Part shown: positions 24,823-32,535 of the stretch, one piece after another
Layout of the letters: the number at the start of each line of letters is the position of its first letter
Position numbering within the stretch: position 1 is the stretch's first letter
Position numbers and translations under genes: made by a program
Origin: Diplonema japonicum
Taxonomy: Eukaryota > Protista > Euglenozoa: Diplonemea
Assembly: GCA_964019335.1 (NCBI GenBank)
Contig: OZ025668.1
Location: forward strand, 372,001 to 436,000
Reading direction: 5' to 3'
Length of the DNA: 64,000 bases
Notes under the pieces: model-generated
Databases searched by the model: none
What the model saw: the letters and a program-made list of their open reading frames with translations, nothing else
Told to the model about the DNA's origin: nothing

Positions 24823-24962
24823 AGAAAAGAAGAAAATAAGAAAAAGAAGAATAATTGTGCTTGTGTTCCCACTGACAGGGCTCATTAAAACACAATCTCT
24901 CTTTCCCTCCTTTTTTTTTCTTCATCTTCTTCTTTTTTTGTTTTTTGTTTTTTTCTTGTTTT

Positions 24963-27257
24963 TTACACTCCCTGAACAAGGTAAAGGTTCATGTGCCAAC
25001 CGCCACCACAAAACTCGCTGCTGTCCCCAGAGCAGCGCTTGTTGCACCTCCCCTCAGATGCGGGAGATGTAGGGGTGCTGTTCCCACACCAACACTCGCT
25101 GCTGTACTGGGCTCCTGCATACTTGTACCCGTTGTGCTGGCAGGTTTTGGTGCATTCCTCGACGGTGTTCCCGCTCCCGTCCCTGTACGCCCGTGTGTCG
25201 AGCTGCCTGTTGGAGTGGTAGTCCTTGAAGCAGCCGATGTACGACACAATGTCCTTTGCAGGGACAGGACGCACCGCGTACACCCTGTTCCTGTAACTCC
25301 CGCCGCAGGCCTCCGAGTTGTCCCCCAGGCAGGGCTCGGAGCACTCCGAGATGGTCGTCCTCTTCGAGGTGCTGAGGTCGTTCCCGCACCTGCACTCGTC
25401 GTTCCACTGCATCGCTGCATAGGTGTACCCGTTGTGCCAACAGGTCTTCGAGCACTCCCCGACCGTCAGCTTCGACGAAGAAAAGGCGAGGTGGGGGAAC
25501 CTTCTCGAAGAGGAGGAATCCTTGAAGCAACCCTCCAAAGCAGGCGTCATCGGCGTCGCCAGAGGCTTCAAGCTGTAGATGGTGTTTGCATAGGACCCGC
25601 CGCAAATCTTCGAGCTGTCTCCCGTGCATGGCTTGTTGCACCTCGCAGGGTCGGCGCGGGTAGACGTCGAGAGGTCGTTCCCACACCAGCACTCCCTCCC
25701 TGCCTGGGTTCCGGAGTAGGTGTATCCTCTTGCCTGGCAGACGGTTGCGCACACCTCGTTCGTGAGCCCCTCGGTGTCAACATAAACAAAGGTAAGCCTC
25801 CTGGAGGAGGAGCTGTCCTTGTAGCACCCTTCCCAAACAGGGGTGTGGACAGGCTCCGGAGCCGTGTACTGGAACACCTTCATCCTGTACCTCCCACCGC
25901 AGTTCGTTTTCGAGTCCCCCGTGCACGCCAGCTCCTCGCAGTCCTCGTCGGGGTGGTGCACCCCTCTCGACACGTCGTTCCCGCACCAGCACTCCTCCCC
26001 GAACTGCGCCCCAGAGAAGGCGTAGTTTTTCTTGTGGCACCTCTCAGAGCAGGACTGGAGAGTGTTCTCGTCGCCCTTGTAGGCGAGGTGCGGCAGCAAC
26101 CTGTTTCCGATCGAGTCAGCGAAGCAGCCGGTTTCCCAAACAGGGGCGGGGGTGGGAGCAGGGGTCGGGACAGGGGTGGGCTGCGGTGTGGGAGCGACGG
26201 TCCAACTGCAGGCGTCGTAGTCGGAGTCGGGGACCCAGACCCCTTCCCCCATCCCGTTTGTCTCGCACTTGATCTTCCCCGCGCTCTGCTGGTTGTCGAA
26301 CCCGCTGCAGGTGTAGAAACACTTCGTCCCAGCAATGTTCAGAGTGGAGCAGGGAGATGCAACCCCCACAATCCCAGCGTCGATGGCCGCGTTGTTCCCG
26401 GAAGCGGGGAGCTGGCAGACCGCGCTGCTGGAACAGGTGAAGTCGGGGTTCCAGGCAGCCGTCCCGTCCTCCTGGTCGATGCACTCCAGGAGCCCGATCT
26501 TTTCGAACCCGGAGCTGCACTGCGCGTGGCACAGCGTCCCCGCCTCGATCACACGGGAGCTCCCGTCGCAGGACGACAGCGAGGCTGGGACAACGTTCCC
26601 CGTCACGGAGGGGGGAGGCGGGGTGGTGCACCGAGGGGGACCCGTGATGACCGAGATCTCAAAGGTCCAGGCGTGTCTCGTCAGGGAACAGGGGTAGGCC
26701 GAGTTGCAGGGATCGAGGTTCTGGTCCGTGTTCGTGAAGTGCGTCTTGTAGCTGCCCGTCTCGACGAACTGGTTGTCCACAATAACGAAGTAGTAGTCCA
26801 CCATCCTCCTGTTCTGGTAGCGGGGGTCGGTCATCACCATTTGGTCTCCTCGGAGCCCCACCGCGTAGTTGGGGAGCTTCGTGTTGGTGTCCGCGTTGTA
26901 GCACTCCACCGCACTGTCAGGGAAAATGGGTACCTTGCCATTGGGGTCCCTCGAATCCAGACAGTGGGTCTTCAACACATCTTCAAAGGCCTGCACGGTC
27001 GACCCTGCATTAGGAAGGTTGCTGGCACTCGGCTTGCAAACATTCGAAAACGGAGACGAAATCACACGGGCGCTTGGGTCCTGGATGTGGACCTGGCCAC
27101 GAGGGTCTGAGCCGCCATGGTAGTAAGTGATGAACCAGAAAGCGAAGGTGTTGGGCTGCTGCTTCGATGTGGCGCTGCACACCACGTTCAAGTGTGCCTC
27201 TGCACTTCCTGAAAGGAGCCCCAAGATGAGGGCTGTTGTCAACATTGTCCGTTCCAT
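24963..27257 (-). CDS. secreted protein: His-terminal N domain, Cys-rich sushi-like repeats, four WSC domains (paralog 1)
   Basis: Signal peptide MERTML...SAEA; four repeats of GCF/Y.D...R....C...C...GY.YAG.Q...ECWCGN...C...C.GD....CGG; PT linker. Confidence 0.9.
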   Translation of the reverse strand: MERTMLTTALILGLLSGSAEAHLNVVCSATSKQQPNTFAFWFITYYHGGSDPRGQVHIQDPSARVISSPFSNVCKPSASNLPNAGSTVQAFEDVLKTHCLDSRDPNGKVPIFPDSAVECYNADTNTKLPNYAVGLRGDQMVMTDPRYQNRRMVDYYFVIVDNQFVETGSYKTHFTNTDQNLDPCNSAYPCSLTRHAWTFEISVITGPPRCTTPPPPSVTGNVVPASLSSCDGSSRVIEAGTLCHAQCSSGFEKIGLLECIDQEDGTAAWNPDFTCSSSAVCQLPASGNNAAIDAGIVGVASPCSTLNIAGTKCFYTCSGFDNQQSAGKIKCETNGMGEGVWVPDSDYDACSWTVAPTPQPTPVPTPAPTPAPVWETGCFADSIGNRLLPHLAYKGDENTLQSCSERCHKKNYAFSGAQFGEECWCGNDVSRGVHHPDEDCEELACTGDSKTNCGGRYRMKVFQYTAPEPVHTPVWEGCYKDSSSSRRLTFVYVDTEGLTNEVCATVCQARGYTYSGTQAGRECWCGNDLSTSTRADPARCNKPCTGDSSKICGGSYANTIYSLKPLATPMTPALEGCFKDSSSSRRFPHLAFSSSKLTVGECSKTCWHNGYTYAAMQWNDECRCGNDLSTSKRTTISECSEPCLGDNSEACGGSYRNRVYAVRPVPAKDIVSYIGCFKDYHSNRQLDTRAYRDGSGNTVEECTKTCQHNGYKYAGAQYSSECWCGNSTPTSPASEGRCNKRCSGDSSEFCGGGWHMNLYLVQGV

Positions 27258-27484
27258 GGTTTTTTTTTCTCTTTTCTTTTTTTTTAAACTGAAAGTGTGT
27301 GTATTCATGTGACACAAACAACTATAATGAGAGAGAGAGAGAGTGATAGAAGAAAGGGGTAAGGAATAAAAAAAGGGGAGTAGGGTAGTCTTCCTTTCTT
27401 TTATTTTTTAATTACCCGAAGGCAAAAAAAAAAAAAAAAAAAAAAGAAAAGAAAAAAAACTTGTTGTTCGATCGAGATGATGAT

Positions 27485-27518
27485 GAACCTGCAGTATGTG
27501 TGTGACAGGATCGCCTAA
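27485..27518. repeat. dispersed palindromic short element, copy 2
   Basis: GAACCTGC-AGTATGTGTGTG-ACAGGATCGCCTAA (spacer expanded by TGTG); absent at the paralogous position ~23010. Confidence 0.8.
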
Positions 27519-28695
27519 GATAGAAAAGAAAGACAAAATAAAAGGCCTCTTGTTACTCACACATCGGTGAAAAAATCAGAATCTATTCATCTAACCACAA
27601 AGTGGAGCGATAAATAGCTGATGGCACTAGCGTGTAGCTGAGACAAAAACAAATGAGAGGAAAATAAAGAAGATCAAAAAAGAAAAGAAAAAAAGAGGGA
27701 AAAAAGAGACATTTAAAGAACAAACAAACAAAAAGTACTTCTTCTTCTTCAAGATTCGTCAACATTCTCTTTGCAACAAATCATCAATATCAATATTATA
27801 TGTGAGAAAAAAACACAACGCACACGGCAACCAAATAACTTTTACAGGGTACCGTGTGCATTGTTTTTCTCATATTATGCTCTTAAAAAATTGATAAATC
27901 TTAATTGAAAAAGAAACTCCAGACAAACTACAATTTGTTTTGTGCACACAGTACAAACCATGAGACACCAACTCTTTTTTTTGTTTTTTTTTTTTTGTTT
28001 TCTAACAAGAACTGAACAGCACTTGTCAAATACGAACGAGAAAAAAAAGGGGGGGAAAGGGGGGAAAGGGGTTGTTGAGAGGGGACAGGGGCTTTTTTAA
28101 GTTTTTTGATTTTGTTTTTGTCATTATTTCTTTTAGAATCATTCTTTTTTGAATCATGGTTTAAAATATCGTGTTTCAATTGCAGGGAGAAGTAACAGAG
28201 GCCACAGACAAAAGTAAAATAAATTAAAAAAAAAACTCATTCACACACAAAGGCAATAAGGGCTAATCTTGGGGCGGGGTGGGGGGTTGAGAATAACGAC
28301 CCTTATGTCTTTTTGCTGTCTGCACGAGTAAACATAAAAGCTACTTGAGCACTCGTTTTCATTTTTTTTTTTTTTTTTTTTTTGCTCGTCACACACAAAG
28401 AAAGTTGCACAAGGTAATAAAAAAATCATGGTTTTCCTTCTCAAAAAACGAAGGGAGGAAGCAAAAAAAAAAAAAAGAAAAAAAGCAATAAAAAAAAGAA
28501 GAGAGAGGAAAGAAAGAAAAAAAAGAGAAAAGAAAAAAAAATAAGAAAAAGAAGAATAATTGTGTTTGTGTACCTGCTGACAGGGGCTCATTAAAACACT
28601 ATCCCTCTTTCCCTCCTTTTTTTCCCCTCCCTTTTTTTTTCATCTCCTTTTTTTTTTTTTTGTTTCGTATATTTTTCTTCTTGTCTTTTTTTATT

Positions 28696-30957
28696 TTAAT
28701 CTCCCCGAACAAAGTAAAGGTTCATGTGCCAACCGCCACCACAAAACTCGCTGCTGTCCCCAGAGCAGCGCTTGTTGCACTTCCCCTCAGATGCGGGAGA
28801 TGCAGGGTGGGTGTTCCCACACCAACACTCGCTGCTGTACTGGGCTCCTGCATACTTGTACCCGTTGTGCTGGCAGGTTTTGGTGCATTCCTCGACGGTG
28901 TTCCCGCTCCCGTCCCTGTACGCCCGTGTGTCGAGCTGCCTGTTGGAGTGGTAGTCCTTGAAGCAGCCGATGTACGACACAATGTCCTTTGCAGGGACAG
29001 GACGCACCGCGTACACCCTGTTCCTGTAACTCCCGCCGCAGGCCTCCGAGTTGTCCCCCAGGCAGGGCTCGGAGCACTCCGAGATGGTCGTCCTCTTCGA
29101 GGTGCTGAGGTCGTTCCCGCACCTGCACTCGTCGTTCCACTGCATCGCTGCATAGGTGTACCCGTTGTGCCAACAGGTCTTCGAGCACTCCCCGACCGTC
29201 AGCTTCGACGAAGAAAAGGCGAGGTGGGGGAACCTTCTCGAAGAGGAGGAATCCTTGAAGCAACCCTCCAAAGCAGGCGTCATCGGCGTCGCCAGAGGCT
29301 TCAAGCTGTAGATGGTGTTTGCATAGGACCCGCCGCAAATCTTCGAGCTGTCTCCCGGGCACGGCTTGTTGCACCTCGCAGGGTCGGCGCGGGTAGACGT
29401 CGAGAGGTCGTTCCCACACCAGCACTCCCTCCCTGCCTGGGTTCCGGAGTAGGTGTATCCTCTGTCCTGGCAGACGGTTGCGCACACCTCGTTCGTGAGC
29501 CCCTCGGTGTCAACATAAACAAAGGTAAGCCTCCTGGAGGAGGAGCTGTCCTTGTAGCACCCTTCCCAAACAGGGGTGTGGACAGGCGCCGGAGCCGTGT
29601 ACTGGAACACCTTCATCCTGTACTTCCCACCGCAGTTCGTTTTCGAGTCCCCCGTGCACGCCAGCTCCTCGCAGTCCTCGTCGGGGTGGTGCACCCCTCT
29701 CGACACGTCGTTCCCGCACCAGCACTCCTCCCCGAACTGCGCCCCAGAGAAGGCGTAGTTTTTCTTGTGGCACCTCTCAGAGCAGGACTGGAGAGTGTTC
29801 TCGTCGCCCTTGTAGGCGAGGTGCGGCAGCAACCTGTTTCCGATCACGTCGGCGAAGCAGCCGGTTTCCCAAACAGGGGCGGGGGTGGGAGCGACGGTCC
29901 AACTGCAGGCGTCGTAGTCGGAGTCGGGGACCCAGACCCCTTCCCCCATCCCGTTTGTCTCGCACTTGATCTTCCCCGCGCTCTGCTGGTTGTCGAACCC
30001 GCTGCAGGTGTAGAAACACTTCGTCCCAGCAATGTTCAGAGTGGAGCAGGGAGATGCAACCCCCACAATCCCAGCGTCGATGGCCGCGTTGTTCCCGGAA
30101 GCGGGGAGCTGGCAGACCGCGCTGCTGGAACAGGTGAAGTCGGGGTTCCAGGCAGCCGTCCCGTCCTCCTGGTCGATGCACTCCAGGAGCCCGATCTTTT
30201 CGAACCCGGAGCTGCACTGCGCGTGGCACAGCGTCCCCGCCTCGATCACACGGGAGCTCCCGTCGCAGGACGACAGCGAGGCTGGGACAACGTTCCCCGT
30301 CACGGAGGGGGGAGGCGGGGTGGTGCACCGAGGGGGGCCCGTGATGACCGAGATCTCAAAGGTCCAGGCGTGTCTCGTCAGGGAACAGGGGTAGGCCGAG
30401 TTGCAGGGATCGAGGTTCGCGTCCGTGTTCGTGAAGTGCGTCTTGTAGCTGCCCGTCTCGACGAACTGGTTGTCCACAATAACGAAGTAGTAGTCCACCA
30501 TTACTGCGGTATGGAAACCGGGGTCGGTCATCACCACCTGGTCTCCTCGGAGCCCCACCGCGTAGTTGGGGAGCTTCGTGTTGGTGTCCGCGTTGTAGCA
30601 CTCCACCGCACTGTCAGGGAAAATGGGAACCTTGCCATCGGCGTCCCTCGAATCCAGACAGTGGGTCTTCAACACATCTTCAAAGGCCTGCACGGTCGAC
30701 CCTGCAATGGGAAGGTTGTCGACATTCGGCTTGCAAACATTCGAAAACGGAGAAGAAATCACACGGGCGCTTGGGTCCTGGATGTGGACCTGGCCACGAG
30801 GGTTCGCGTCGTCATCATGTTGGTAAGTGATGAACCAGAAAGCGAAGGTGTTGGGCTGCTGCTTCGATGTGGAGCTGCACACCACGTTTAAGTGTGCCTC
30901 TGCACTTCCTGAAAGGAGCCCCAAGATGAGGGCTGTTGTCAACATTGTCCGTTCCAT
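28696..30957 (-). CDS. secreted protein: His-terminal N domain, Cys-rich sushi-like repeats, four WSC domains (paralog 2)
   Basis: Near-identical to paralog 1, with a shorter PT linker and patchy N-domain differences. Confidence 0.9.
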   Translation of the reverse strand: MERTMLTTALILGLLSGSAEAHLNVVCSSTSKQQPNTFAFWFITYQHDDDANPRGQVHIQDPSARVISSPFSNVCKPNVDNLPIAGSTVQAFEDVLKTHCLDSRDADGKVPIFPDSAVECYNADTNTKLPNYAVGLRGDQVVMTDPGFHTAVMVDYYFVIVDNQFVETGSYKTHFTNTDANLDPCNSAYPCSLTRHAWTFEISVITGPPRCTTPPPPSVTGNVVPASLSSCDGSSRVIEAGTLCHAQCSSGFEKIGLLECIDQEDGTAAWNPDFTCSSSAVCQLPASGNNAAIDAGIVGVASPCSTLNIAGTKCFYTCSGFDNQQSAGKIKCETNGMGEGVWVPDSDYDACSWTVAPTPAPVWETGCFADVIGNRLLPHLAYKGDENTLQSCSERCHKKNYAFSGAQFGEECWCGNDVSRGVHHPDEDCEELACTGDSKTNCGGKYRMKVFQYTAPAPVHTPVWEGCYKDSSSSRRLTFVYVDTEGLTNEVCATVCQDRGYTYSGTQAGRECWCGNDLSTSTRADPARCNKPCPGDSSKICGGSYANTIYSLKPLATPMTPALEGCFKDSSSSRRFPHLAFSSSKLTVGECSKTCWHNGYTYAAMQWNDECRCGNDLSTSKRTTISECSEPCLGDNSEACGGSYRNRVYAVRPVPAKDIVSYIGCFKDYHSNRQLDTRAYRDGSGNTVEECTKTCQHNGYKYAGAQYSSECWCGNTHPASPASEGKCNKRCSGDSSEFCGGGWHMNLYFVRGD

Positions 30958-31129
30958 TGTTTTTTTTTCTCTTTTCTTCTTCTTTTTTTATATTTTTGTG
31001 GCTTGTTTTTTTTTTTTTTTTTTTTTTTTATTCTTTCTTAAAAACTGAAAGTGTGTAACGTAAGGTTCTGCCGTTTTCAAATTAAACAGTAAAATACTAC
31101 TGGTTACTAGTGTTATTGTTAAAATAAAT

Positions 31130-32535
31130 CTACTCCCGCAGGCTTCGTTGCCTTTTTTGAGATTCGCTGCCTTCTTCGTGTAAGGGATCTGCTGTCTCCT
31201 CTCTCGACCTCTCACTGCCGACCCTGTCTCTTCTTCTCCGTCTCGATCTTCTCCTGTCTCTGTAATTGTCATTGCTTCTGTCTCTATTTGTTCTGTTCCT
31301 CTCGTGAGACCTGCTGTCACGCCGCCGCCGCCTCCGCTCGCATGACCTCTCTCTCCGTCGCCCCCCGTCAGAGCTCCTGTCTCTGCCTCCTTTTCTCCTG
31401 TCACGGCTCTCTTTGCTTTCGTTTTGGATAGGCCCTTCTGTCCGTTCCGTTCGGGACTCTTCCTTTTTATCCGCGGTCGTTTCGACTGCCAACTTCTCAG
31501 CTTTGTGCTGCCACTCACGACGTGCTTCCACCTCAGGGTCGACTGGAGCAGCCAGCTTCTCAGGCACAGACAGTTTCTGCAGTCGAGCTAGTCTTTTGCG
31601 TTCAGCTGTTAACCTTGAGACATGTTGCAAGCAATACCTTCGCTAATATCCGACACAGGCTCCTTGATATGTGCTGCCTTCCATTTCTGCCATAAAACAC
31701 GGACCTGTGCGGATTGCTTTAACGATCTGTCGATACCTCTGCCTCGAGCTTCATGTTCACTTCTTCCAGCTTGTCTCTGTCCATCGTGATTTCCTGTAGG
31801 TGGGATGAATGTCTAAAATAACACGCACCTTCCGCCTCACGAACTGCGTGATGAACGCCCTGTCGTCGACGGAGACCGACGCCTGCATCGTGAAGTTCTT
31901 CACCTTTGCCAACGGTGCGTCAGCAGGTGCCGTGATCGACACGGAACTGAGCAACCTGTTTGAAGGCTGTGTTTGTACACACGGGTGACATACTTGAGTG
32001 CGTTATGGCTGCTTTGGGCACCGGTGAACGTAACCTTGAGAATGGGCGAGTCCATGGGGCCAAGGGGCGCAGGGGGCTCGTCCAGCGTAATGGAAGACGT
32101 AGGGCCACAGATGTCCAGAAGTTCTTTTGTAACCTCTACAATGGCGGGGACATCAACCCCCGCAGGCAGTGCAACCACAACAGGCACCGGCCGATCATGC
32201 AGAGCCCGCTGTTGCATTTGCAGTGCATGGATGTGAACTGGTTGCTCGACAGGGGGAGGCGGCGGAGGTGGGGTGAGAATTCCATTATGGTGATGCTGGT
32301 GGTGGTGGTGGTGATGGTGATGGTGATGGTGGTGATGATGGTGGTAGCTCTGGTGCACGTACCCTGGCATGTAACCAGGGTGCGGGGGATATGGCACACC
32401 ACCCATGTACGGAGGGAGAGGTGGCGGGACAGGATGATGCATCCCATATGGAGGGGGCGGGAGGTATCCATGCATCATATGCGGCGGCCCCCCTGGGGGA
32501 GGGTACCCCGCCATGTTCCTCCCTCCTGAAAACAT
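31130..32535 (-). CDS. RBM25/Snu71-like RNA-binding protein (Pro/His-rich N-terminus, RRM-like segment, RE/RS-rich tail), 5 exons
   Basis: Introns 31956-31993, 31794-31828, 31705-31736 and 31606-31637 join ORF fragments in frame; LLDICG...VTF......AL.LL resembles the RBM25 RRM. Confidence 0.6.

Follow-up and report, generated by a model that had tools for sequence, protein, structure and literature searches.

A diplonemid-centred protein family with a predicted N-terminal histidine is a candidate for a new type of copper site

Some secreted proteins bind copper through a histidine that becomes their first residue once the signal peptide has been removed. Does a protein domain without known relatives, found in a marine protist, do the same? 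The question is raised by two neighbouring genes, geneA and geneB, in a stretch of 64,000 nucleotides of the Diplonema japonicum genome (assembly GCA_964019335.1, contig OZ025668.1, positions 372,001 to 436,000; hereafter the window). Both are intact, intronless open reading frames (ORFs) on the minus strand, 3.7 kb apart and 94% identical. Each encodes, in the same order, a signal peptide of 21 residues, a His-first domain of ~190 residues (the N-domain), two modules with six cysteines each, a PT linker and four WSC domains. An initial annotation, made from the letters of the sequence, had described this layout correctly, with an N-domain of ~185 residues that proved slightly short, and had proposed that the domain is a copper-binding module related in kind to the histidine-brace proteins.

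We searched 1.84 billion representative proteins exhaustively with phmmer and obtained 20 matches, 19 of them true; the other (P0012), a repeat protein aligned over 33 residues only, was left out. The relatives with a named source come from D. japonicum, D. papillatum (KAJ9454301, KAJ9452214 and KAJ9444848/9), D. ambulator, Hemistasia phaeocysticola and the cercozoan Mataza sp. D1, and further ones from marine metagenomes and from ENA, JGI and Logan contigs. A search of the D. japonicum genome (62.5 Mb, 132 contigs, with the window on the contig here called C21) located 23 copies of the N-domain. Across the 19 members scanned, the N-domain gave no Pfam match at E ≤ 10, no solved structure matched it by sequence, whether a single sequence or a profile was used, and the ESM Atlas held no look-alike. 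These comparisons indicate that the N-domain is a real, new, small and undescribed family centred on diplonemids. The literature searched showed no link between diplonemids and histidine-brace proteins, and nothing relevant on new LPMO (lytic polysaccharide monooxygenase) families.

Conservation was read from a 29-row family alignment, to which P0037 and P0014 were added for the histidine counts. Using the (−3, −1) rule together with conservation across the family, we predict that both signal peptides are cleaved after A-E-A, directly before a mature N-terminus H-L-N-V-V-C-S, at the place where the initial annotation had put it. The same pattern recurs in homologs down to ~25% identity: of the 29 members whose N-terminus can be read (25–58% identity to the query), 28 have histidine directly behind the signal peptide, and the complete signal peptides, of 12–26 residues, all have A, G or S at −1. 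An apparent Arg1 in P0019 is an artefact of a truncated or unspliced gene model; P0037, a longer member of its cluster, has a signal peptide and then histidine.

A second histidine follows a conserved T-Y, 24–25 residues past His1, in 28 of 30 members. Conservation of both histidines in homologs, on which the initial annotation had staked its proposal, is thus high. In the two window genes this residue is preceded by F-A-F-W-F-I-T-Y and is kept in surroundings that are not the same in both (Q-H-D-D-D-A-N in one, Y-H-G-G-S-D in the other), as had been noted earlier. The position given for it, mature residue 26, is right for the clade of the window genes and does not hold family-wide: T-Y-x-H (+25) is found in a D. 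japonicum-specific clade with the window genes and in P0005, P0006 and P0014, whereas most members have T-Y-H (+24). Other near-invariant positions are Cys6, 54, 79, 99 and 170, Tyr24, Gly34, Pro41, Asp94, Tyr100, Gly148 and Thr157; Asp158 is kept in 22 of 29 rows. A sixth cysteine, at 124 in some clades and at 164 in others, brings the near-invariant five to a number that suggests three disulfides. A nickel hook like that of NiSOD (H1...C6) was considered and rejected, as there is no Cys2 and Cys6 is among the six conserved cysteines that most likely form the three disulfides.

Two D. japonicum paralogs have lost several of these residues together. The copy on contig C14 (L015:2934-4694) begins with Gln1, lacks the second histidine, carries T23A and has Asp158 deleted; an N-terminal glutamine would cyclise, blocking the amine. 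In the paralog C37b (L017:1988-5740, contig C37), His1 is kept, the second histidine is lost and Y24F, D94A and D158S have occurred. Both stand on long branches of the maximum-likelihood tree (1.2 for the C14 copy and 1.57 for C37b), whereas their kin are on short ones (0.38 for C37a, the sister of C37b, and ≤0.1 for the clade-mates of the C14 copy). Members from contigs C114 and C86 and from Mataza, with equal or lower overall identity, nevertheless keep all these site residues. Joint loss on long branches, absent from equally diverged members, fits the decay of one shared functional site, and the two paralogs are candidates for 'dead' members. Finally, the N-domain stands at the extreme N-terminus of every member, in proteins from 207 to 5982 residues long.

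Taken together, the conserved N-terminal histidine, its partner histidine, their joint loss and the obligatory N-terminal position make a copper (metal) site centred on His1 the best single explanation for the family, and we regard the case for it as evenly balanced.

A fold for the domain was predicted with AlphaFold2. A single-sequence run with a mean predicted local distance difference test score (pLDDT) of 39.8 was replaced by one on the 29-row alignment, which reached a mean pLDDT of 90.7 and a predicted template modelling score of 0.89. The resulting model is a β-sandwich, with strands at residues 2-10, 13-24, 35-39, 45-49, 96-102, 111-115, 131-141, 148-155 and 177-181 and a helix at 68-78. 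Foldseek gave no match in the PDB at E ≤ 0.001. With VIA-align, the best Z score was 5.5 over 48,161 chains and 5.6 on Foldseek's top 1000 chains; these belong to CBM56 (6a6c; Z 5.5, root-mean-square deviation (rmsd) 2.9 Å, 83 of 84 residues) and to the FN3 domain D1 of EpoR (1cn4; Z 5.6, rmsd 3.0 Å, 92 residues), and the glucan-binding domain of GNBP3 scored Z 4.1. The FN3-like matches span about half of the 191 residues, at Z scores below the level that shows kinship. As all structural matches are generic sandwiches, the model suggests an FN3-like core, with about half of the domain formed by insertion and no solved relative evident. The searches brought up no unrelated known domain as a confident match, and the earlier description of the N-domain as unclassified stands for sequence and structure alike.

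From residue 2 onwards, the model core superposes on entire FN3 domains, whose N-terminus lies at the same pole as their BC loop. Since strands A (2-10) and B (13-24) are paired in a hairpin, His1 and His25/26 are predicted from topology to lie at the same end of it. In the model, Asp94 precedes strand 96-102 and Thr157/Asp158 follow strand 148-155; if the strands alternate as in FN3 domains, these residues would be at the same pole, as would most of the loops that vary between geneA and geneB. On this basis, a mechanism for the copper site can be outlined. Removal of the signal peptide would expose the amino group and imidazole of His1, which, with the conserved histidine (mature residue 25 or 26) that stands where the N-terminal β-hairpin ends, would bind one copper in the manner of a histidine brace, at the N-terminal pole of a disulfide-bonded β-sandwich head. 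The conserved Tyr24, Asp94 and Thr157/Asp158 may complete the site, and glycan attachment would be the task of the four WSC domains at the C-terminus.

How does such a site compare with known histidine-brace proteins? YcnI, which binds copper, is encoded in the copper-uptake operon ycnKJI and has been proposed to be a chaperone, is a β-sandwich whose crystallographically established copper ligands, His27 and Glu50, are mature residues 1 and 24 (PMC8424229). This 'monohistidine brace' family (DUF1775, PF07987) is secreted like the N-domain and has nearly the ligand spacing proposed for the N-domain (1 and 25/26), so the initial annotation was right to call the spacing closer to YcnI than to LPMOs. 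In YcnI, His1 holds the copper with both its amino group and its side chain, and a further side chain, 23 residues on where the N-terminal hairpin ends, does so too; a hairpin-end ligand can therefore reach the amino terminus in a β-sandwich. The likeness has limits. The second ligand of YcnI is Glu, with a cushioning Trp, whereas the N-domain has His at +24/25 and a conserved Trp20 on strand B that is not YcnI-like; YcnI is bacterial and of ~130 residues, the N-domain family is centred on diplonemids and has ~190. The DUF1775 hidden Markov model found its Bacillus subtilis control and no match in the D. japonicum genome at E ≤ 0.01, despite the 23 N-domain copies there, and YcnI was not among the best 50 structural matches of the N-domain.

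LPMOs (CAZy families AA9-AA11 and AA13-AA17) have in common with geneA and geneB a predicted cut before His1, a second conserved histidine and a layout of head, linker and carbohydrate-binding module (CBM). Their core, an Ig/FN3-like sandwich of about 170-250 residues, is also of the general kind predicted for the N-domain. In LPMOs, however, the second histidine comes 60-110 residues further on, beyond a long L2 excursion rather than on the N-terminal hairpin. Canonical LPMOs are themselves plentiful in D. japonicum: we found at least 49 full-length LPMO_10 genes (AA10/AA15-type, E ~1e-45), many in tandem arrays, on contigs C13, C58, C63, C17, C33, C104, C111 and others. In each of their proteins the signal peptide is cut ahead of H-G-Y and the head is joined by a P-rich linker to one or two CBM1-like Cys modules, a layout that the head, linker and WSC tail of geneA and geneB mirror. 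The literature searched, including the main text of the D. papillatum genome paper, did not mention LPMOs in diplonemids. The label 'LPMO-like' given by the initial annotation is not borne out by sequence or fold. Aligned by hhalign with the D. japonicum LPMO_10 proteins, the N-domain family reached a probability of 2.4%, that is, no detectable homology; the Pfam scan of the 19 members at E ≤ 10, which covers families with a Pfam model only, found no LPMO family; and no LPMO was among the best 50 structural matches (Z ≥ 3.9; VIA-align, 48,161 chains).

CopC and X325/Bim1, secreted proteins or proteins anchored at the surface, combine an N-terminal histidine brace with a small β-sandwich and serve functions other than that of LPMOs (PMC10952591). 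The CopC structure 5icu aligns with the N-domain model from its first residue (Z 4.3, rmsd 3.5 Å, 89 residues); this Z score is within the generic-sandwich background, and the N-domain has no CopC (PF04234) match in Pfam. The ligands of CopC are His1 plus Asp/His near residue 85-91. Neither sequence nor fold places the N-domain with LPMO, YcnI or CopC; what it has in common with them is the N-terminal histidine, in a layout most like that of YcnI.

Several observations speak against a copper site. The N-domain shows no detectable kinship, by sequence or fold, to any known histidine-brace family. In a simple strand register of the model, His1 would pair with residue 22, which would leave His26 about four residues further out. 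A rigid metal ligand would not usually move by one residue from clade to clade, as the second histidine does, and the closest structural neighbours, CBM56 and a cytokine-receptor FN3 domain (all Z < 6), are non-catalytic binding modules. Cleavage site, metal and activity are all predictions from sequence and model. To these is added the behaviour of the WSC tail. The WSC assignment is secure (PF01822, E 1.5e-66, 221 and 220.7 bits against a gathering cut-off of 27.8, in four stretches per protein), and the domain is massively expanded in the D. japonicum genome, with at least 150 domain matches. It always forms a C-terminal tail of 1-5 tandem copies (examples, L027-L041), behind LVIVD beta-propeller repeats, CUB, DUF6923 or a head without a Pfam match. 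geneA and geneB have the same C-terminal repeats as these proteins, and their N-domain head is new. Because such tails also follow CUB, LVIVD and unknown heads, they do not imply a carbohydrate-active enzyme in front and do not argue specifically for the glycan-attacking module that the initial annotation had considered possible; a WSC tail marks attachment to glycan, not catalysis.

The most serious rival to the copper site is a metal-free, non-catalytic binding or adhesion module, CBM- or FN3-like, at the tip of the protein, with the histidines structural or in contact with the ligand. We hold this to be possible without being probable. Binding domains (CBM56, EpoR FN3 and GNBP3) are indeed the closest structural neighbours, yet all these matches are too weak to mean more than a common sandwich. 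It would suit the many members in which the domain tips a long PT stalk with a C-terminal transmembrane segment, as in an adhesin or receptor, and other WSC proteins of the genome do have binding heads such as CUB. On the other hand, strict conservation of mature residue +1 and exclusive N-terminal placement in about 30 architectures would be unusual for a plain binding module, and the decay of His1, the second histidine, Asp94 and Asp158 together in two paralogs is more like the loss of an active or metal site.

If copper is bound at His1, its role may lie outside glycan cleavage. Copper binding or handling, or other redox chemistry, without such cleavage is unlikely overall, and we give the same low standing to its more specific form, histidine-brace-type copper handling (uptake, buffering or delivery) or surface electron transfer in the manner of X325/Bim1, CopC or YcnI. 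The putative ligand spacing of 1/+24-25, which matches the 1/+24 of YcnI, agrees with this, as do the lack of LPMO fold similarity and the many stalked, membrane-anchored members, X325 being surface-anchored too (PMC10952591). However, the domain, with 190 residues, exceeds the chaperones in size (about 100-130) and conserves additional polar residues; the loops round the putative site are hypervariable between paralogs; and the glycan-binding tails of the window genes and a paralog amplified to 12 copies in tandem arrays suit abundant secreted enzymes or coat proteins better. A metal-independent enzyme of hydrolase or lyase type, with Asp94, Asp158, Tyr100 or a histidine as catalytic residue, would account for the near-invariance of Asp94, Thr157-Asp158 and Tyr100 alongside the histidines and for their predicted place at one pole, but is very improbable, as the N-domain resembles no glycoside hydrolase or lyase family in sequence or fold and the obligatory N-terminal position and invariant residue +1 would be left unexplained.

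With the copper site as the preferred reading, oxidative, LPMO-like attack on polysaccharide is speculative and on the whole doubtful. Its fullest form can be offered only tentatively: a new auxiliary-activity-type copper oxidase family, with a full brace (His1 and His25/26) on the N-terminal hairpin and a fold unrelated to LPMOs, that would have arisen independently in marine heterotrophic protists and would attack WSC-held marine glycans alongside a large LPMO arsenal.

The divergence between geneA and geneB is a mosaic. No nucleotide differs across the signal peptide and both Cys modules (165 codons), the PT linker differs by a 12-residue indel, and the N-domain has a synonymous divergence (dS) of 0.08 and a ratio of nonsynonymous to synonymous divergence (dN/dS) of 0.72. 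Its replacements are bunched in loops 25-31, 57-63, 85-86 and 126-131, with six consecutive replacements at mature residues 126-131, and the second histidine is kept. Unchanged flanks and bunched loop replacements suggest gene conversion of the flanks together with relaxed or diversifying change in the surface loops around the kept histidine. Contigs from public sequencing runs of one coded organism carry the coding sequence nearly unchanged. Two other coded organisms have runs with contigs that match geneB at 95-99% identity (window 28400-31400) and carry in-frame changes, with 3 bases missing at 29249 and 9 bases added at 29922; these contigs probably represent close relatives or strains with orthologs.

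The Cys modules accompany the N-domain across the family. A comparison with sushi/CCP domains yielded a weak phmmer match to the complement control protein 1e5g (E 0.048), whereas the modules have six cysteines each against the 4-Cys sushi pattern, and no Pfam match at E ≤ 10. WSC tails are confined, among the D. japonicum paralogs scanned, to the copies on C21 (geneA and geneB) and C38; the other paralogs scanned had no relevant Pfam domain. C38 and C37 hold two copies each, as does C21, single copies are on C5, C36, C14, C114 and C86, and 12 are on C102, in two tandem arrays of six and five near-identical copies (periods of 3.75 kb and 3.21 kb) plus one separate copy. The 58%-identical C102 paralog has ~550 residues and no WSC, and its arrays suggest dosage amplification. 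As for transcripts, the EukProt entry P0001 (D. japonicum) is identical to one family paralog and the C5 paralog is present in a transcriptome; the D. papillatum orthologs are not listed in the supplements of that species' subcellular proteome. Orthologs in D. papillatum, which is genetically tractable, include DIPPA_57491 and DIPPA_31253.

Elsewhere, several homologs have a PT stalk and a transmembrane segment, one has EGF-like repeats and two have a domain with a GDPH motif. These two, P0017 and P0018 (marine metagenome), start with H-M-T-x-V-C-T-S-T-A-P-S, and their C-terminal region begins G-D-P-H, a motif that recalls autocleaving domains of RGM/VWD type, and has no Pfam match. P0014 (Logan contig, 5982 residues) is a giant protein with the His-first domain at its tip, a large number of FN3-like repeats and a C-terminus of multi-pass membrane type; copies of the second Cys module, but not of the N-domain, are also found inside it. 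P0023 (JGI, 1015 residues) combines a His-first tip with a large C-terminal part containing several hydrophobic, probably membrane-spanning stretches. A WD40 tail on P0005 was set aside as a probably fused gene model. Further homolog searches yielded one paralog transcript only with the window protein, no new member with P0017 and none with the family alignment, which was swamped by low-complexity PT words; a related-locus search with a narrow alignment found two short metagenome contigs only.

Within the window, nearly all large ORFs, including all those with a Pfam domain, are on the minus strand, the one-strand gene order expected for a euglenozoan gene array. The other genes with Pfam domains (kinase, kinesin, ion channel, TRAF-type, MFS, GST and CEP76) have no functional link to geneA and geneB. 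Opposite both genes run long plus-strand ORFs (24945-27110, 721 residues, and 28660-30891, 743 residues), whose translations are of low complexity and rich in Arg, Pro, Val and Gly; most likely these are antisense artefacts, by-products of codon bias rather than genes. Coordinates are collected in Table 1.

Table 1. Positions of geneA, geneB and their parts (window coordinates), and of related loci elsewhere in the D. japonicum genome (coordinates of the named contig or locus).
Feature	Position	Strand	Basis or remark
geneB, secreted modular protein	28696..30957	-	Complete intronless ORF, 753 aa; ORF, Pfam scan
geneB signal peptide	30895..30957	-	21 aa, A at -3 and -1
geneB His1 codon	30892..30894	-	Predicted mature N-terminus
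geneB second conserved His	30817..30819	-	Mature residue 26, directly past model strand B (13-24)
geneB N-domain	30325..30894	-	~190 aa; predicted FN3-like beta-sandwich core plus insertions, three predicted disulfides
geneB two 6-Cys modules	29905..30327	-	Weakly sushi/CCP-like
geneB PT linker	29863..29904	-	Short, 14 aa
geneB four WSC domains	28699..29862	-	PF01822
geneA, tandem paralog	24963..27257	-	764 aa if the MERTM start common to both genes is used; 94% identity with geneB
geneA signal peptide	27195..27257	-	Same as that of geneB
geneA His1 codon	27192..27194	-	
geneA second conserved His	27117..27119	-	Mature residue 26
geneA N-domain	26628..27194	-	89% identical to that of geneB, differences grouped in four loops
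geneA two 6-Cys modules	26208..26630	-	Zero nucleotide differences from geneB
geneA PT linker	26130..26207	-	26 aa, 12 residues longer than that of geneB
geneA four WSC domains	24966..26129	-	
N-domain copies on C102	C102:61095-80490, 226584-240050, 310001-310627		L005-L012
LPMO_10 example loci	L022:1000-2067, L025:968-2077, L026:1130-1954		

The histidine-brace copper proteins known so far comprise eight LPMO families together with X325, CopC, PmoB, PCuAC and YcnI. With each new LPMO family, and with X325/Bim1 as well, came a further substrate or a further biological role. The N-domain family, which is centred on diplonemids, has an invariant N-terminal histidine and a confident model and lacks known relatives, is a concrete and cheaply testable candidate for addition to these proteins. 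If the copper site is real, a brace would have evolved here independently, with its two histidines on a single hairpin, and would inform the minimal requirements of such sites; if the proteins also cleave glycans, they would be an additional player in marine carbon turnover.

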